Positions 4,601 to 16,515 of a stretch of 37,653 nucleotides of DNA are shown one piece after another. Made by a program: the position numbers and the translations under genes. A model generated the notes under the pieces. It saw nothing but the letters and a program-made list of their open reading frames with translations. It was not told the DNA's origin and made no database searches. How positions within the stretch are numbered: the first letter of the stretch is position 1; the number at the start of each line of letters is the position of its first letter. This stretch comes from Perkinsus chesapeaki ATCC PRA-425 (lineage: Eukaryota; Protista; Perkinsozoa): assembly GCA_013115145.1 (NCBI GenBank), contig JAAPAO010000343.1, positions 1-37,653 of the forward strand, read 5' to 3'.

Positions 4601-6824
4601 CGTAAGGGGAATTCGGTAGTGGACGATGGGACCACTTTTATATGGAGACCCGCCCTGAGGTGTCGCTTTCGTCGTCATTTTTATGATGGCTATGGCTAGG
4701 AGCTTGTTGTTTTGAAAAACAGAAGACCGTTTACAGGTACCTTGAGTCTAGCGAGTCACCGCTACAGTTGGCTTTGAGGCTGATGGCTGAAGGAAAGGAT
4801 AAAGAGGCAATGCTTGCGCTTGAGGCTGAGGTGATTAAGTGGCATATACGTATTGCATTTGTAACTCCATACCGCTCAAGTGGATCTGGCAGCTGTTTTT
4901 GCGTCCGGTTCAAATAGATTTTTTGTGATTGACCTCAAAGTGTGTAGGAATGTATTCTCCAGCCATAAGCATCATAGAGTACTTATTAGCAGCTAGTTAA
5001 TAGCGCATCTATTTTACTGCTTCGTTTCAATTCACATCGAACAAAACTCCGAAGATCGGGGCGGGAGAAAATTACAACTGGGAAGGCGCTGGCTTGGTAG
5101 AATATAATCTTTGTAGTCATGCGAAAATTGCGAAAATTTTTCCCCGGGTCGTCAGAGGTAAGCTCTCTCCGACGCTAGGCAAAGGGATGCCTGTATCTCA
5201 ACCCTGTTGTTCATTATATATAATTTGGTACCACAGAGCTACATATTGCCTTTTTTGTATATATATATTTATCATATCATCTTGCAGGTACAACAGCACC
5301 CTGATTCCTCTGAAGGCTGGCGTTTGCTAGGACTGATGCACGCTGCGAACGATATGGACGTTGAAGCTATAGTGAGAAAGATGGTAGCATATCTGCGGGC
5401 TTTGAAGTGTGATGTTTTCAGACGTGTTTGGAGAAAGGGCACGACGCTGATCCGTACAATACGGACAGTCTCCTGGCGTTGGGAGTGTCTCTGACTAATG
5501 AGCTTGATTCTTATAGAGCTTTGAAGATACTGAGGTGGGTCCAGGCCGTTTGATGCGATACAGGCGGAAATAGATTTGTGATTTGTATCGACATCGTGTC
5601 CGAGTGGTTAAGGAGCTGGACTTGAAATCCAATGGGCTCAGCCCGCGCAGGTTCGAATCCTGCCGATGTCGTTTTTCAGAATTTATTTTTTCACAGCCTC
5701 TGTTTCAGGGAATGGCTCCAAAACCACGAAACCTACCATGGACTAGTTCAAGCTAGCACCGTTGATCCCCAAATGCTCCTCGACTATGACTTTCTCAAAA
5801 AGGACGTGGGCGTTACTTGGCGCAATTCCGACACATGTGACACCTAGGTTGTTTCACTTTTGGAGAAGGCAACTCAGTCTCGACCACAAGACTCGGACGC
5901 GTTTATTGCCCTCGGCGTCGCCCACAACATTGATAGAAACTATTCAAAGGCAGTTGAGAGTTTTATAACTGCTGCAACACTCCGACCGGAGGACCCGAGT
6001 TTGTAGGAATTGGCGGACTAAGAGTCGGAGTTACTGTTGTACAGGTGGAACAAGCTTGGAGCTACCTTGGCGAACTCCGGACACTCTGAAGCATCTCTTG
6101 TGGCATATAATCAGGTAACGCGTATAGTGTATCTCGTTTCAAATTAAACAGTTTTGGACCTTCCGCGTGTATTATAAGTACTTCTGTATACACGAACGTC
6201 TCGGCTATGCGAATATGTTATTTTTGAGAGAGATTTTTCCCCCTCGAGCAGTGGCGTTTGGATCAAAAAGCCACCGCAGTCGTAAAAATGAAATGCCGAA
6301 TGAGACGTGGACGTGTTACCGCTCTCAAAGAAATAGCTGAGGCTGTGCATCTGGTTAGTATTACAAAAACGTCTAATAGGACATGCGTCCCATCCCACTG
6401 TCTTGGCAGGCCCTGAGCTTGAAGCCCAACTACGCCCGCGCCTGGTCAAATCTAGCGATAGCCCACTGCAATTTGAACCAGCATGAAGATGGCATAAGGC
6501 AAGTGCATGAGGTTTGTCCGCACGGTCACCAAGTGGTCTCGTAGGTTCTATTTGGCAGCACTAAAACTAAGTCCAAAGGCGGAACATTTGTGGACTCTTT
6601 TATTTAATGCGGTGAGTCGTAATGGCTACCAGCGACATTAACGGCTGTTTGTAGGTCGCGGCTTGGGCACCAGATAGAGACGAGCTGGGCGATATGGTTG
6701 ATCGGCATGATATGGCCGGGTTGAACGCGGCAGTTGGAGGGGGGGTAAGTTGATGGTAGCTGTAAAAGATAAGTGTCGAAGCGATGATAACGAACAGAGG
6801 AATGAGCTATAGGTTTCTATTTAA
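1605..6824 (+). CDS. PEX5: Peroxisomal targeting signal 1 receptor PEX5 (multi-exon; 5' end uncertain)
   Basis: Hand-spliced exons include 3107-3198, 4737-4830, 5288-5371, 5422-5534, 5709-5805, 5848-6002, 6045-6114, 6410-6498, 6545-6611 and 6655-6744. They give YEFISENPY...LALEAEVQQHPDSSEGWRLLG, LALGVSLTNE, LWNKLGATLANSG and ALSLKPNYARAWSNLAIAH, which is the PEX5 TPR signature. Also present are WxxxF/Y motifs (WAQEF about 2505, WEVLY about 3771), the KFANSQFVDFVDQIVKG box and an N-terminal NPLKSFAD motif (about 1665). Confidence 0.93.
3365..3657. mobile_element. Tc1/mariner-type MITE (293 bp) inside PEX5 intron 3199-3740
   Basis: Terminal inverted repeats CAGGGTGACTCC / GGGTCACCCTG, TA dinucleotide on both flanks (3363-64 and 3658-59), no coding capacity. 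Confidence 0.85.
4298..4338 (+). pseudogene. tRNA 3'-half relic (B-box) in a non-exonic part of PEX5
   Basis: GGTC-GCAGG-TTCGATC-CCTAG-GCCAGCT-A followed by T7 at 4332-4338. No D-arm or anticodon arm is recognisable upstream. Confidence 0.55.
5590..5671 (+). tRNA. tRNA-Ser(TGA), nested in PEX5 intron 5535-5708 (sense)
   Basis: 82 nt. Acceptor stem GACATCG/CGATGTC, anticodon loop CTTGAAA, long variable arm, T-loop TTCGAAT, G73, followed by TTTTT. Confidence 0.97.
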
Positions 6825-9383: not shown

Positions 9384-12300
9384 ATGCCCAACGAGTCTCG
9401 GCTTAGGGTACTGATAACAGCTTCCTCGGAGCTGCTCGGAAGAATTTTACTGCACACACTTGCGAGGTGAGCAGGCATCTTGGTTAGCATTGGGCGAATT
9501 CAGTAATGACTTACAGTACGCGCAATCTAAAGCGCGCGTTTGGTGTCACCGACATCATTTCTTAAGCAGACCACATATGAGATTGCGCGTACTCTATAAT
9601 ATTATCTCCATAAATTTTTCAATGTCTATTATATCTTTTACAACGAAAAAGATGCAGCATTTCTCACAAGTCGTGAGAAATATAGCGGTTGTGAAAATAA
9701 ATAGTTAAAAAGTGTAATTTGTGGTTCTATGTGAAATGTGTTAAATTTTCCCGATGCATGACCCCTTTTGTGTTCGTTAAAACGAACTAATAGGTGTGTC
9801 GAACTTCAATAAACTATTTTGTTTATTTATACTATTATATAATTATTTAATAGCTGCCTCGATTATTAATCACACCTTTAAAAATTGAAGGCAATGGAAT
9901 CAATCGTCAACTTTTGTATGTTTTCAGAGAGCAGCCGGAATCTGTTATTTATTTGCTTGTCGAGTCGGGTGCGCAGGATTACTTTATAATCGATAGCGAT
10001 CTCACCAACAAGAGTCCCTCGACTCCGCATTCTCCCGAGATCAGGAAAGTCTACATGGACGCAGGTAAGGCGTTGAGAAATTGCCTAGTGAGAGCAAGAT
10101 TAGCAAGATTCATTGTAGGTCCCCTGCCGAATGATATCAACGCTGTTGTCTACTGCGGTGTCGGAAGCTCTCCTGAGCAGGCCGCCAAGTACGCCGCTCC
10201 AATCTTTAGCGTTTGCGACTGACAGCATCGGTTCGATGAGATTCGGCGAACCCCGCTGTGGTGTCTTGGTCGTAGAAAGTCGTAATGTTATATCTGTTTG
10301 TTACGTATCATTCGCGGCACTTTTGTGATCTTCAGATTTTTCGATCGGTGCTCTGCCCAATTGCCCGACCTTAAAGTCTTCGTCTATGCGAGCTCCGTGT
10401 ATTCCAACTGGGGCGTTAGAAACCAGTTTACGTCCGGAAATGTTACAGAGGTAACCGTAAGCTGCAAACAAGCTGTGAGTTGGGTGTAGACGTTCTCGCT
10501 CGCACCAACGTCCGATCGCCCGCGGGCCTCCTCGATTGCTGGCATCCTTATCGGTAGCACACGCAGGAGATGGCCGAGCAAAAACATCTATTTAAGGTGA
10601 GAATTTGGGCCTCAGGAATGACACATACGAATCGTATGATACGATTGCGATGATGCATGGCAATGAAAAGAAGGATTATGCACAGTACCCCTGGCCATCT
10701 GAAGACGGTTGAAGTTTCAACGGCCCCCGACAGAGTTCCAGTTGAAATTTCAAATGTATAGGTTGTCACGTATTGTGAATTGATTAGTAATTTTTTATGG
10801 GCCAGAATTGAGAGAGTTTGATACTGTTCGATGTTAAATACCGTTCAATGCAAGTGTTGACTGGTAGCCGTGAGCCTATTATGACAATAGTTTGCTTCCC
10901 TTGCTGTTTTCTCTATCTCAACTGTCTTGCAGTTACTGCTGTGAGCAAGCTTTGGCAAGGCGATGGTTGCAAGTAGAGAGGCCGTGCCAGTTGGTAAGTT
11001 CTCGCCCTTCTACCAACCTCTCAGGAATCTTCAGGCATTCGTTCGATTCGGTCTGCTAACTCCTCCTGCTTGTTCGACTTTCTCTCGAGCCTTCAACGCG
11101 GTGGCCGAGCGCGTCGCCATTCCCGGGGCGCGCGTGCGTGCGGGCGCTGGAGGATTGAGAGAATCTCGCCACGACGTGTTGATGACCGCATCAGTTCTGC
11201 CCAATTTGGACGGTCGCCGTACCGACCCCAAAGCGGTACTTCTCATCACGCCTGCCGACTTGGCCGCACGCGCCATCTTGAGTGCGGCTCTGGACGCCCT
11301 CCACAGAAATGGGGAGGTGGAATCCGTCCAAGGTTCGATCCCCAGGCTTGACGTTTTCAGGTTTCTGATGCTCCTCAAGTGTACGCCTTGGCACTGGCAT
11401 CACCGATGCTACAATGGGGCAAATTGCGAAAGCTCATAATCGATCGTTCGGGAGGGCGGGTTTCGGCCGCCGATGGTCACCACGGTGGTGCTGTGTTACA
11501 CAGGACCTCCTTATCGTTTGATGTAAGCCACCCCCTGGATGTCAATACAACAGAGCATCTGTGAAGTTTTCCAATAACCGCCGCGGTTGGGCATCCACAC
11601 CAGATGTGCGGCTCGGTCTTATTGGGTATTCACTCCGCCGGAGAGATTGGTATCCTTCTGGATAGAAAGAATGCCAATTGCTCTAGCGGAGAGCGTCATT
11701 GAAAGTTTTAATGGCGAAAAACGGTTGGGAAAATATTCAAGTTTCCGTTGGTTTTTTTGTGGCACCTACTTCTCAGCAAATTGATATCAGTGGTACGCAG
11801 GGTAAATCGAGCAGCATGTGACAATCATATATTATTCCTGGTGCGCAATAGTACTATTAATGATTCTCAATATTTAATTATAAAGAGCTTGAGATACTGT
11901 CCCACATGGTATAGTACTGTTGAGCTCAGGTCTGCAGCCCTAACCTTGAAATAATCGCCCCAAGTCTCTGCGCTGATGCCAAAGGCATTCACGTTCACAA
12001 CTATGTTATACATTGTTTGGGCATCCTTAAGAATGTTGGTGAGGAGTGTCTAGACGCCCATATGCCCGCGGGAAGGAGCCTTATGATGCAGCAGCCTCTG
12101 CGCTATACTGATATATTATCTGATACCAAATGGCAACACGGTGGCGTTGTTAACTTTGTAAGAAGAATCGAGTCGATAGTGCAAGGTCAAATTGAGGCTT
12201 TGACGCCTGTGTGTTTTTCGAGGCCTGTCGGCTGTCTTTTGCAGTTCATTAGGAAATTTCCGTCTTAGTCGAGCCGGAAGCTGATGAGCAATTTATTGTG

Positions 12301-15300
12301 GAGTATGTGGCCCTCGTTTTCGGTCAGCGACATACGTTGGCGAGGAGAGGCAATTTCCGTTGGCTCCCGCGCTCTGGATTTGGGAAGCCTTAAATAGCAT
12401 AAATGACAAGGGAGGAGGCTCGTCAGTTCTTTACATCGAGATTGGTATTTTGATACAACAGATGATTAGTCGGTTAATAATAGTTAGACGAACCAATAAT
12501 AATAATAATTATGCATTCCCTTGCTGGTTGCACGTCTTGCGATGACTTGTCGTATTTTCAACCTCCCGATGTTCCACTGTCGTCTGTCATCTCACAGGCA
12601 CTCCGCAAGGAGGCCCTATCCTACCACATGCCCGATATGGAGAAAGTAAGATCACTGGTCCTCAACTCCAAGGCTGTACGGGAAGCTACACACAGCAAGA
12701 AGCTTAAAGCCGAAGCTGCCGCCATGCTGGTGAGATTTAGATGAATAACGGCTTATGTGCCGTGATTGCCAATCACACCAATGACCGAGACCAATCACCA
12801 ATCACTGATTGGTAGCGTCCCGTGTATTCTCTGCGGTGTACGAAAAGTCCACAGCTAGAAAGGAGGCGCTTTCCCTCTCCTTTTTCCGGCCAGGGTAGTG
12901 GTCGACCAACTAGCACCAGGGCAGGGCACTAGTGGCAGTAGTCTACTGCTAGCAAGCCACCGAGTCATTCGGAGAGTTTCAGAGAACCGTAGTCGCAACA
13001 GCTCCCGCTTGAAAAAGAATTCTGATTCCAAAGGCAGCACTCTAACCATTTAGGACCGAATCATGGGAAATCAGCGAAGCGACATAATAAGGGTATTTGT
13101 CATTGTACTGCACAAAGTGTTCACGTCTATATATGATAGAGTGCTGGTCAACCATGACGGCCTTGACAAGCTGAAGGAGTAGGTCGCGGGTTCGAATCCC
13201 AGGATGGGCACTTTTGCTTTCAGACTTAACCAACGTGGCGCCAAGGTTCTATTATTGCCTACACACAGGAGCTACATCGACTTCCTCGTCCTCAGCTATA
13301 TTTGCTATTAGTAGCATTTCAAGGGATCGTGAGATTCAATGGCTTTGTGGTTAATTCGTGCAGCACGGACCGTTCCCGATCTCCCCCGTCATGAACGGGA
13401 AGATCCGTATGCAGTTTTCTAGGGAAGAAAATTCCCCTTCAAGCTGAGGGCCTCAACTATTGTCACAAGTAGAATGATATAGCTACTTTGTTAGGCATAT
13501 ATGATACTGTATTATCAAAGCAATACCGTAAAACCCTCCACGCGATTACGTCCAACCAGATTGACAGGAATTCTCCTCGAGGAGCACCAGTCACTGTAAC
13601 TTGGTCGTTATTTCAGTGCCGATATTCGATTACCTTTCATCGCCACTGGTGATAACTTTTTGTCAATTGTTGGCATTTGGAAGATTCTGCAGCACTCAGG
13701 TAAGAAGTTTGTTAAAAGTTCCGATGCGGGGACTCGAACCCCGGTCGCGTGGGTGAGAGCCACGAATCCTAACCAGCTAGACTACATCGGAATGCATCCG
13801 ATACGTTGCAATTCTGGCTCGCAGGTGCCTTCTTCATGAAGCGTTCCTTCAACAGTGAGACTCACCCTCTTTACTCAATCGTCTTCAAGACATACATGCA
13901 AGTTGTCCTCGAGGAGCAAGGTAACCTCCCCAATCAATAACCACATTATCACGGCATCGCTGGAGAGCAATTCAAATGAGCGATTGCCTGGATGATCTAG
14001 TTATCCCAGTGGCACTATCGCTTCCGTTATGCAACCGAAACTCACTATATGCCAAGTCGATTCATTGTGCGGTCCTCGTATATCGATGGTAATTCATCAC
14101 AGCGTAGGGTCTCATTTTACGGGAGGACATTTGCCTTCCGGTTGGTTTTTTGGACACTGCAGTTCTTTCAGGTTGTGTAGAGATGTTCATCGAGGGCGCT
14201 CGCTCGCGCAGCGGCACTACCATTCGTCCGCCCAAAGTCGGTCTGCTAAGATTTGCCGCCGAGCCGGCGGTTCAAGCCGCAATGAGCAGCCCCATTTCTG
14301 ATATCACTGGTGAGACAACGTCGATGACTCTGTATTACAATCTCTTTGTTTGTGTGCATGCGAACTGAGTCGGTTGTGAGGAGGTGTCTACTTTCCCTCA
14401 GATCAAGACGAGGTCTATTTGGTGCCGATTTCTATCGGCTATTCCCGTGTGATGGAAGTCGATTCTCTCGCCACGGAGCTAGAAGGCCGCGCTAAAGTAG
14501 CCGAGAGTCTCGCAAGGACAGTCTCGTAAGAAAACCTGATATAGGTAAAGCAAACGCACTATTTAGGGCGCTTCGATACCTGTCGATGAACTTCGGCACG
14601 CTTACGGTGCATATTGACCCGCAGCCTATAAAGGTCTCGGATGCAGTGAAACGGTGGAAAGATGGCCAAACGAGTGAGCTCGGGTTGTTGGAGTTTATTA
14701 CTGTATAAGGCTTCACGAAGCGACAGTTGGGACTCGGTGACGTAATCTGAGCTGGTTAAACTGGTTGCAGATGCACTCCCGAAAAGGCCAAGATACACAA
14801 CACCGTACCAGCAGTTAGCGGAGGAAGTCGCAGATCGCCTCGATGCGAACATGCCTATACATACCACCCACTTGGTAGGTGAACCTTCATCTGGATGATA
14901 GAGATCCAGAATTAATTTTTATAATAAATGTGCAGGGTGACCCAAAAAATGTAATTTTTTGAAGGACTCCTCCGGGAGGGAGAATATTTCGGCGACACGT
15001 ACGGCCTTCGAAGTTTCTTGAGGACGACCTTGTTATGGTTTTTCGGGTCACCCTGTGCGAGCAGAATATGAAGTGGATCTCACGATGAACGGCTTATAAA
15101 AGTGACTACGCAGTACTCGCCACGGCATCTATGACTTTCCGTCTGTGAAATATATCTGAGTAACATTGCCACTGGGAGTTTCCTATTTCCTACCGCTTTA
15201 GGTGGCTGCAATTTTACTGTGGAAGAGACACGATTCTGTTCCCACCGTCAGCCACGCTGTCATGGTGGACAAGGTGAGATGGCTCTCCTCGCTACTGAAG

Positions 15301-16515
15301 AGACGTGGGCTCACGATTATACTGGACGACACCAACGTACGAAGGCGCAAGTTCGATTCCTTGCACGACATTTTATTGCATTAATTCAGACGTCCTCGGC
15401 GGTTTCCCGAGTGGCTTCTCTTTATGTTGATCATGTTATCATTTCTGCACCTGAGGAGGAGACCGGTGAAGTGAGGTAGGCACGATTGGCCCTCCAGCGG
15501 GGCTGGAGGAGATGATTTCGCATGTTCATGTGAATTGAATTTTCTCATCGGAAGCCCAAGAAATACTCAACCTCTATCTTTGACAATCGCCGAAATCTAC
15601 GGCCATTCGGGAAAGTTCGCTGGAAATACTTTTCTTCGCCAACACATGTCGTGGGCGACCGTTCATTAGTACTCCTAAACTGAACGGAGCGATGAGCTCA
15701 ACTGATGTTCTGGTAGGTATTCAGTTTGCCCCAACAACCCCTTATTTGCTACATTACTATTAAGCTATTACCGCAACCAACTCATATATAGTCTGGGCCA
15801 TGAAGCATCTATCATACTGGCCGCTGGTGATGCGCAGAAGCTCTCCTTCCTTCGCGAAGAGCTCCTGCAGGAGTGCATTCCGGCCAGTACTGATGAATCT
15901 GCGGTAGAGTGTAACAGCGATCCACAACTAAGAGACTTCGCGGTTTCCTTGATCGGCCCCGTTGTCGAATGTTGGTGGGTTGTGACGCTCATTGCGAGCG
16001 GTTGTCGAGGAGCTGTCACCACTACTGCGGCCGAACTGGTCTCTGGAGCGTCTGGCTTGGCCAAGGAGCTTTATGAGGAAGGCAAGTGTGTGTACTTAGA
16101 GGCCTGCTCATTTGACTTCGCCAAGAAGGCTGTGAGAGGAATGACTAAAAGAGGGTGAGCTGGTCGATGAAGTCACTTCCGTTGATTCACACATCAAATA
16201 CCATATTAATAGCATGCACTCAGGTGTCTTGTGATGAACGGCAGGAATATCAAGGTTGATGTTGATAAGACTCGCGAGCTGCTGGCTCTGCTCGAGTCTA
16301 TTAGACAATGTAAGCTCCGAGTTCAGCAGTCTTTGCAAGCCTATCTTCATTTAGCCCCGGCCCTTCCGCAAGGCAGGGCTTTATCCGACTCTTCTGAAGT
16401 GCTCTGCAGCGTGGAGGAAAGGCAGCCGCCTACTCAGAGACGGTTCTTCACTCAACTGCGCGGCATGACACTGATTAGGCCCCTGGGTCGATCCCATGGC
16501 ACATCGAAAATGTGA
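9384..16515 (+). CDS. FARAT-like fusion: degenerate fatty acyl-CoA reductase domain + DHAP/glycerol-3-phosphate acyltransferase (GNPAT-like), C-terminal PTS1 (SKM)
   Basis: N-terminal half shows FAR-like motifs: RVLITASSELLG (9384-9466), IYLLV, NAVVYCG, LKVFVYASSVYSN, LAFVRFGLL, TPADLAARAILSAA, QVYAL..LQWGKL and NYVIHCLGILKN. C-terminal half shows PTHRSYIDFLVLSYI (block I), IATGDNF, SGAFFMKRSF, EMFIEGARSRSG..PPKVGLL, YLVPISIGYSRVME, NFGTLTVH and LSYYRNQL. It ends TSKM-stop at 16513-16515. Confidence 0.85.
11317..11360 (+). pseudogene. 44-nt intron consisting largely of a tRNA 3' half
   Basis: GTGGAATCCGTC-CAAGG-TTCGATC-CCCAG-GCTTGAC-G-TTTT-CAG. Removing it joins ...HRNGE to VSDAPQVYAL in frame. 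Confidence 0.6.
13179..13223 (+). pseudogene. 45-nt intron consisting largely of a tRNA 3' half
   Basis: GT-AGGTC-GCGGG-TTCGAAT-CCCAG-GATGGGC-A-C-TTTT-GCTTTCAG. Removing it joins ...DKLKE to LNQRGAKVLLLPTHRSYIDF in frame. Confidence 0.7.
13719..13791 (-). tRNA. tRNA-Glu(CTC), nested antisense in intron 13700-13824 of the FARAT-like gene
   Basis: TCCGATG...CATCGGA-A, anticodon arm CGTGG-CTCTCAC-CCACG, T-loop TTCGAGT, followed by TTTT. The intron splits QHSG|AFFMKRSF. Confidence 0.97.
14933..15055. mobile_element. Short MITE (123 bp), same family as 3365-3657, in an intron of the FARAT-like gene
   Basis: 17-bp TIRs with 1 mismatch (CAGGGTGACCCAAAAAA / TTTTTCGGGTCACCCTG). Internal AATATTTCG.CGACACGT is shared with the reverse complement of the first MITE. 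Flanked by TG on both sides. Confidence 0.8.
15337..15389 (+). pseudogene. 53-nt intron with a degenerate tRNA T-arm/3'-end-like sequence
   Basis: GTAC-GAAGGC-GCAAG-TTCGATTC-CTTGC-ACGACA-TTTT...TTCAG. The hairpin GCAAG/CTTGC surrounds a TTCGA loop. Confidence 0.35.

Follow-up and report, generated by a model that had tools for sequence, protein, structure and literature searches.

The window analyzed here is the whole of contig JAAPAO010000343.1 (37,653 nucleotides; assembly GCA_013115145.1) of Perkinsus chesapeaki ATCC PRA-425. It carries FOL47_006193, a gene whose predicted protein joins an N-terminal module resembling a fatty acyl-CoA reductase (FAR) to an acyltransferase of the GNPAT type, the dihydroxyacetone phosphate (DHAP) acyltransferases (DHAPAT). 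The arrangement recalls FARAT, the bifunctional fatty acyl-CoA reductase/DHAP acyltransferase of Tetrahymena thermophila and Dictyostelium discoideum (PMC13012113, PMC7375469). An earlier inspection of the letters by themselves (the sequence-only reading) had proposed a FARAT-type fusion whose reductase domain looked catalytically dead. We searched the window DNA exon by exon, carried out whole-protein analyses on the public proteins of P. chesapeaki (P0008) and P. olseni (P0006) and tallied codon counts residue by residue.

Gene structure and reading frame

The public protein FOL47_006193 (P0008, 1023 aa) maps exactly to 23 exons on the forward strand (9384-16512, with the stop codon at 16513-16515), and a single GT-AG solution was obtained for each of the 22 introns (Table 1). 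The P. olseni orthologue (P0006, 1053 aa) shows the identical 23-exon pattern on its own contig. The junction 10596/10933, on which the proposed loss of the catalytic residues depended, is the annotated one, and the peptide WPSKNIYL-S-YCCEQ was confirmed across it, with W163 at 10571 and the S171 codon split between 10595-10596 and 10933. Exon 5 aligned without gaps to P. olseni DNA, giving 23 of 35 identical residues in the frame of the sequence-only reading; the other two frames gave 12-15 of 35, and in the window each of them is interrupted by a stop codon. Donor and acceptor positions match between P. chesapeaki and P. olseni, and the changes in the 61-nt exon 6 relative to P. olseni are mostly synonymous. 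Three P. olseni models (P0001, P0003 and P0007) follow another exon 5 frame (..HTEEMAEQ..), which runs into a TAG at 10555-10557 in the window and yields 12 identities in 35 compared to 23, and we regard these models as mis-framed; P0001 also skips exon 6. A Sterile-like exon that we had initially picked out by eye at 11578-11781 is unconserved in P. olseni and belongs to neither gene model, and the segment was assigned to an intron.

Table 1. Coordinates of the FOL47_006193 features and of the tRNA gene within it
Feature	Position	Strand	Basis
Exons 1-9, degenerate FAR-like module, residues 1-415	9384..12157	+	Exact P0008 mapping, unique GT-AG; same exon pattern in P. olseni P0006
Exons 1-5	9384-9466, 9928-10064, 10119-10188, 10336-10450, 10490-10596	+	P0008 mapping
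Exons 6-9	10933-10993, 11035-11316, 11361-11522, 11930-12157	+	P0008 mapping
Remnant glycine-rich NAD(P)H loop TASSELLG, residues 12-19 (FARAT: TGCSGFLG)	9417..9440	+	Alignments, pattern scan
Glu40 at the conserved Arg after strand beta-2 (FARAT ..LLRSKK, window LLVESGA)	9962..9964	+	MAFFT, hhalign
HxAA motif, lost (FARAT IIHSAAS, window VVYCGVG)			MAFFT alignment
FARAT STCYVN, window SSVYSN; Ser kept			MAFFT alignment
Catalytic segment (FARAT WPNTYTFTKFLTE, window WPSKNIYLSYCCE); Tyr to Asn167, Lys to Ser171			MAFFT alignment
Exon 5 end, WPSKNIYL and first two bases of the Ser171 codon; Asn167 at 10583-10585	10571..10596	+	MAFFT, hhalign, P0008 mapping
Exon 6 (61 nt), last base of the Ser171 codon, then YCCEQALARRWLQVERPCQL	10933..10993	+	P0008 mapping
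Exons 10-23, GNPAT/DHAPAT-type acyltransferase and GPAT_C region, residues 416-1023	12598..16515	+	P0008 mapping, Pfam
Exons 10-16	12598-12729, 13054-13178, 13224-13310, 13617-13699, 13825-13920, 14172-14309, 14402-14525	+	P0008 mapping
Exons 17-23	14567-14673, 14771-14874, 15202-15336, 15390-15475, 15792-16154 (probably 15717-16154), 16224-16309, 16355-16515	+	P0008 mapping
Block I, HRSYID (H515...D520)	13264..13281	+	Invariant in FARAT alignment
Block III, FIEGARSRSG (residues 595-604)	14186..14215	+	FARAT alignment
C-terminal SKM, PTS1-type peroxisomal signal	16504..16512	+	Pattern [SAC][KRH][LM]
tRNA-Glu(CTC), complete, antisense in intron 13 (13700-13824, 125 nt), outside the protein	13718..13791	-	Same tRNA, same intron in P. 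olseni and P. marinus

Both modules appear to lie in a single polypeptide of about 1020-1050 residues encoded by one transcript. Conservation with P. olseni ends precisely at the exon 9 donor (12157) and restarts at the exon 10 acceptor (12598), and the stretch ALRKEA(L/V)SY, located 5' of the first methionine of exon 10, is conserved in three Perkinsus species. The linker between the modules is collinear with single-chain FARAT proteins, including the invariant W407, and in P. marinus a FAR-like module lies directly upstream of the annotated DHAPAT. We considered the possibility of two genes, a small N-terminal gene and a DHAPAT of about 600 aa, with the fusion as an artefact of the gene models. 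This is how P. marinus is annotated, with a 626-aa DHAPAT starting at the exon 10 methionine and separate fragments upstream, but the P. marinus locus has fragmentary models and an assembly gap (a run of N at L022 7066-7165 that spans exons 5-6), whereas the P. chesapeaki and P. olseni models independently join both parts through the same 23 exons. Together with the boundaries of coding conservation, which starts at the acceptor and upstream of the exon 10 methionine in three species, and with the linker alignment, this makes the two-gene arrangement improbable.

Additional observations were made on the gene model. In the interval 15476-15791, ahead of the exon 21 start of the public model, an AG at 15715-15716 offers an alternative acceptor, with which exon 21 would open in frame at 15717 and gain 25 codons (R-YSVCPNNPLFATLLLSYYRNQLIY). 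Both the P. olseni and the P. marinus protein conserve these codons, and 25 residues of the GPAT_C region are probably missing from the public P. chesapeaki model. Intron sizes are mixed, with introns of 39-55 nt alongside others of 100-460 nt, and two tiny introns (11317-11360, 44 nt; 13179-13223, 45 nt) carry tRNA T-arm-like sequence of the GGTTCGAATCC type.

The N-terminal module and its lost motifs

Residues 1-415 were aligned by MAFFT collinearly with the FAR modules of FARAT proteins, motif under motif, and it is at the motifs that the Perkinsus sequences depart from them (Table 1). The replacement of TGxTGFLG by TASSELLG, claimed in the sequence-only reading, was confirmed; the loop reads TASSELLG in P. 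olseni and TGGSELLG in P. marinus, and its second glycine is a glutamate in all three species. In NADPH-dependent extended short-chain dehydrogenases/reductases (SDRs) the arginine after strand beta-2 contacts the 2'-phosphate of NADPH, and the P. chesapeaki module has Glu40 at this position. MAFFT and hhalign alike placed WPSKNIYLSYCCE without gaps under WPNTYTFTKFLTE of true FARATs, a register that upholds the proposed change of YxxxK to NxxxS. An alternative register with YCCEQ under YTFTK, in which the tyrosine would be kept and the lysine replaced by glutamine, was not favored by either program, and no lysine is present either way. A pattern scan of residues 1-420 found no YxxxK, YxxxR or GxxGxxG, while four true FARATs used as controls all carry both GxxGxxG and YTFTK where expected. 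The Sterile region has lost about 100 residues and keeps about half its length; only its end motif (HNYVIHCLG under DWYQYLTLVCYG) and the linker tryptophan remain. A search of the whole window by tblastn with four FAR modules recovered no hidden exon with intact motifs, and the alternative exon restoring YxxxK or GxxGxxG that could have overturned the proposal was thus not found in the window. The motif losses are common to P. chesapeaki and P. olseni, and the loss of the second glycine extends to P. marinus.

Losses of this kind would be expected to leave an extended SDR unable to bind NAD(P)H or transfer hydride. Because two of the three loop glycines, the arginine, the HxAA motif and both the tyrosine and the lysine are lost, the module is presumed unable to carry out either step, and very probably it cannot bind NADPH or reduce acyl-CoA. 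The competing proposal is that the module remains an active reductase, a FAR or a related acyl-thioester or aldehyde reductase, with non-canonical cofactor binding and catalysis. The purifying selection described below, the retained serine of the catalytic-triad region (STCY compared to SSVY) and the conservation across species of the degenerate motif positions themselves are all in keeping with such an enzyme. Against it stand the complete absence of the three motifs from residues 1-420, the glutamates at the second loop glycine (in three species) and at the post-beta-2 arginine, the deletion in the Sterile region and the failure to find AGPS, which would consume the alcohol product. We consider continued reductase activity improbable, about as much so as two separate genes.

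The proposal that the module descends from a FAR was evaluated with profile and feature comparisons. The two Perkinsus sequences were compared by hhalign to FAR-module alignments, giving scores of 35.0 and 37.1 (P 0.001 and 0.0006) over 244-251 columns. After 200 column shuffles the score was 16.3 +/- 2.9 with a maximum of 25.7, and none of the 200 reached the real score of 35; a reversed-sequence control gave 21.7. With ESM Atlas features of residues 1-420, all of the best 10 clusters carry NAD_binding_4 (PF07993), at a score of 0.91 and with 189-197 of 256 features shared (193-197 for P. chesapeaki). The outcome was alike for P. chesapeaki and P. olseni, and some of the clusters go by the names fatty acyl-CoA reductase or male sterility protein. 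These results support residues 1-415 as a distant homologue of the FAR module of FARAT fusions.

The N-terminal 415 residues might instead be a lineage-specific extension that is not derived from a FAR, its likeness due to chance or to a generic Rossmann-like pattern. Such an origin would suit the lack of a Pfam match, the modest hhalign probability and the low confidence of the structure models (all detailed below), as well as a broad search with the 94-aa exon 7 that returned Perkinsus relatives only. It would have to accommodate some 250 collinear columns whose score the shuffles never equaled, and a full set of NAD_binding_4 neighbors among the best ten for two orthologues. In the closest acyltransferase relatives the FAR module stands in the same place and is of similar length, and the Perkinsus module keeps the end-of-Sterile motif and the linker tryptophan. 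This origin seems to us slightly less probable still than an active reductase.

Purifying selection on the module is clear. The synonymous sites are saturated between P. chesapeaki and P. olseni (proportion of synonymous differences, pS, about 0.75-0.77), and the corresponding nonsynonymous proportion (pN) is 0.217 for the module, 0.115 for the acyltransferase half and 0.047 for the acyltransferase core. For P. olseni and P. marinus the ratio of nonsynonymous to synonymous rates (dN/dS) is 0.137, 0.065 and 0.035 in the same order, and the module evolves at about double the rate of the acyltransferase half. That faster rate and the disappearance of the motifs and part of the Sterile region would fit a functionless decaying relic, or a gene that is a pseudogene as a whole, but a dN/dS of 0.14, a pN of 0.22 against saturated synonymous sites, nine of nine module exons open with canonical splice sites in two species and the mostly synonymous change in exon 6 make this the least credible of the alternatives, and very improbable.

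The acyltransferase half and the apparently missing ether-lipid route

The acyltransferase blocks had been called intact, and the C-terminal half bears this out. Searched with Pfam, P0008 matched PF01553 with 63.5 bits and PF19277 (GPAT_C) with 83.5 bits; exon by exon, PF01553 gave 20.3 and 17.1 bits, which is sub-threshold, and PF19277 gave 36 bits, over the cut-off. Alignment with FARAT homologues showed the residues of blocks I-IV to be invariant (H515/D520, GAFF..R at 558-564, FxEGxRSRSG at 595-604 and VP at 643-644). The C-terminal tripeptide is SKM in P. chesapeaki and P. marinus and SRM in P. olseni, and all three fit [SAC][KRH][LM], the pattern of a type 1 peroxisomal targeting signal (PTS1). 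SKM is also the glycosomal targeting signal of the Leishmania enzyme LmDAT (PMC3219689), and a DHAPAT with a PTS1 has been reported from the P. olseni transcriptome (PMC5755239).

Outside Perkinsus, the acyltransferase core is most closely related to proteins 1092-1138 aa long that combine PF07993, PF03015, PF01553 and PF19277 and share 44% identity with it. In a quick maximum-likelihood tree (30 rows, 291 columns) the three Perkinsus sequences are sister to the FARAT clade (SH-aLRT 93), and both groups are nested in a eukaryotic clade (support 99) together with sequences from Stentor, Leishmania and Drosophila and other FARAT fusions. Judged from its conserved residues, the C-terminal half is an intact, working-looking DHAP (GNPAT-type) acyltransferase. 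Because of the C-terminal PTS1 (-SKM) the enzyme most likely acts in the peroxisome, where it would make acyl-DHAP; family placement and the PTS1 suggest that DHAP is preferred over glycerol-3-phosphate.

We then looked for partners of this enzyme in the genome assembly (41.7 Mb, 3544 contigs), again exon by exon. PF07993 matched three loci, on contigs C309, C3063 and C3058, and no part of the window; PF03015 was matched neither in the window nor anywhere else in the genome search, and the FAR module of FARAT used as a protein query returned no match. The locus on C309 was rejected as a second FAR since it is a thioester reductase of the non-ribosomal peptide synthetase type following a carrier domain, and the candidates on C3063 and C3058 were rejected as epimerase- or dehydrogenase-like (a threonine-dehydrogenase-like one on C3063 and a GalE-like one). 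FAD-oxidase_C matched two loci, which were discarded as AGPS candidates since their best solved relatives are D-2-hydroxyglutarate dehydrogenase (C876) and D-lactate dehydrogenase (C2771). Nine further FAD_binding_4 loci share one match pattern, and the three that were scanned are BBE-like oxidases. Neither AGPS nor an additional FAR was found in the P. chesapeaki assembly. In the table of a P. olseni transcriptome survey, DHAPAT with a PTS1 is present and AGPS and FAR are marked with dashes (PMC5755239). The entire ether-lipid route seems to be missing in Perkinsus.

Some observations from these searches concern other parts of the genome. The nine FAD_binding_4 loci are intron-less open reading frames of 538-880 aa, on C2328, C3360 (two), C2417, C2992, C664 (two), C2931 and C2888; the three scanned (C2328, C3360 and C2888) also have a BBE domain, which suggests an expanded berberine-bridge-like oxidase family in P. 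chesapeaki. Contig C3063 is AT-rich, with Asn/Gln-rich open frames, runs of N and a composition unlike the rest of the genome, and may be a contaminant or an odd region. At the locus itself, intron 13, which holds the antisense tRNA-Glu(CTC), lies between the exons for acyltransferase blocks I and II. The same intron carries tRNA-Glu(CTC) in P. olseni (L021 8712-8785 and L019 4708-4781) and P. marinus (L022 9960-10032). A tRNA-Ser(TGA) gene lies upstream of the gene in P. chesapeaki (5589-5672, forward strand) and P. marinus (L022 5434-5515), and the two loci also share tRNA-His and tRNA-Arg(CCT), which in P. marinus lie downstream of the gene. This suggests that the synteny of tRNA genes around the locus is conserved.

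A candidate retained pseudoenzyme

The explanation we favor, and consider probable, is that FOL47_006193 encodes a peroxisomal DHAP acyltransferase descended from FARAT, the reductase of which has turned into a retained pseudoenzyme. The ancestor would have been a FARAT fusion, the initiator of ether-lipid synthesis in ciliates, amoebozoans and Discoba. The N-terminal 415 residues of the Perkinsus protein would still keep the fold order of extended SDRs and FARs, with two of the three loop glycines gone and one replaced by glutamate. Because neither AGPS nor another FAR was found in Perkinsus, there would be no ether-lipid synthesis and the reductase would be useless; with AGPS gone, fatty alcohol would have lost its use and the chemistry of the reductase would have followed. 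The acyl-DHAP would presumably be fed from the peroxisome into ordinary glycerolipid synthesis. The module has probably been retained because the acyltransferase depends on it to fold, to remain stable or to handle acyl-CoA, and a structural or regulatory role fits the selective constraint that remains.

Several points weigh against this explanation. No Pfam match to PF07993 (NAD_binding_4) or PF03015 (Sterile) was obtained at E <= 10 on the exons, on P0008 and P0006 or on their N-terminal parts, and the probability that hhalign assigned to the FAR match was only 22-28%. The AlphaFold models are poor, with a confidence score (pLDDT) of 31.8 from Perkinsus rows by themselves and of 40.6 once FARAT rows were included. 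Foldseek gave weak, generic extended-SDR matches for the second model, the alignment of which already contained FAR sequences, and we give the structure models almost no weight as to FAR homology. The P. marinus annotation splits the gene into a 626-aa DHAPAT from the exon 10 methionine and small upstream fragments, and the joining of both modules in one transcript is argued from gene models and conservation boundaries. The loss of motifs predicts inactivity, short of proof. The absence of AGPS and FAR comes from an exon-by-exon search of a fragmented assembly of 3544 contigs, and in the P. olseni survey table (PMC5755239) we took blank cells as present, on the assumption that check marks had been dropped from the text.

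Measured against these results, the sequence-only reading holds in its outline. The fusion is of FARAT type in that the acyltransferase groups with FARAT fusions and the N-terminal module is a distant FAR homologue by hhalign, column shuffles and ESM features. Among the Pfam families it had named, Acyltransferase was found, and NAD_binding_4 and Sterile were not matched. Its retained pseudo-reductase agrees with the loss of cofactor and catalytic motifs in every register and with the purifying selection; the regulatory, scaffolding or acyl-CoA-binding role that it assigned to the module remains a suggestion. Its further idea, that fatty alcohol is supplied by another enzyme or by a host, is unnecessary, as neither AGPS, the user of the alcohol, nor another FAR was found, in agreement with PMC5755239.

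Compared to FARAT, the predicted Perkinsus protein has the same one-chain order of a FAR-like module, a short linker, a GNPAT-type acyltransferase with GPAT_C and a PTS1-type C-terminus, and its acyltransferase groups with the unnamed FARAT proteins to which it is 44% identical. The closest named FARAT returned, with the FAR module of FARAT as the query, was that of the ciliate Euplotes/Moneuplotes. The Perkinsus protein differs from FARAT in its reductase module, which falls below Pfam thresholds, has none of GxxGxxG, the post-beta-2 arginine, HxAA or YxxxK, and has a Sterile region shortened by about 100 residues; with no AGPS found, the fusion would be unable to initiate ether-lipid synthesis. 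The animal GNPAT/DHAPAT enzymes (Drosophila Dhap-at and human GNPAT) belong to the same family, with the same blocks, 37-38% core identity and peroxisomal targeting, but they are 600-750 residues long and have no FAR-like module, FAR being a separate protein (PMC13012113).

The best precedent for a structural role of the module is LmDAT of Leishmania major, a GNPAT-type acyltransferase with a C-terminal SKM and an N-terminal extension that sequence search did not recognize as a FAR. This extension of the trypanosomatid DHAPAT was recently recognized as a cryptic FAR(AT) by structure comparison, which unmasked cryptic FAR modules in Discoba (PMC13012113). It is needed for a stable, active enzyme, and N-terminal deletions of LmDAT left a barely detectable, inactive one (PMC3219689). 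The LmDAT extension is longer (about 650-700 residues) and by hhalign is not directly similar to the module of Perkinsus (P 0.6), and in Leishmania AGPS is present and ether lipids are made. In the SDR superfamily, pseudoenzyme domains keep their Rossmann-type fold order and remain under selection after the cofactor and catalytic motifs are lost, an analogy of kind only.

FARAT fusions are now viewed as the ancestral eukaryotic start of ether-lipid synthesis, with Ciliophora as the sole group of Diaphoretickes that has FARAT (PMC13012113). A FARAT-type fusion in Perkinsus whose reductase is degenerate seems not to have been described in the literature searched, because PMC13012113 does not mention Perkinsus and the EukProt entry of P. 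marinus is the truncated 626-aa model; it would be a variant of a known architecture. We put forward, tentatively and with clearly less confidence than the explanation above, the wider proposal that the ancestor shared by ciliates and myzozoans already had FARAT, and that the fusion reached Perkinsus by vertical descent within alveolates and was not acquired by ciliates only as the 2026 PNAS survey could suggest. After the loss of AGPS, its reductase half would have become a pseudoenzyme kept by selection, on which the peroxisomal acyltransferase would now rely to fold, to assemble or to be supplied with acyl-CoA, an independent parallel to LmDAT.

The finding would extend the FARAT architecture to Perkinsozoa and bears on the proposed history of its transfer. 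It may also offer a clean natural case in which the loss of a pathway partner, AGPS, was followed by the loss of chemistry in the reductase half while the selective constraint on it was kept. A module this degenerate would explain why the P. olseni survey scored DHAPAT as present and FAR as absent (PMC5755239). The sequence of the module is parasite-specific, and if the module is needed for the stability of DHAPAT as in Leishmania, it would be an ordinary candidate for functional work on this pathogen of shellfish.

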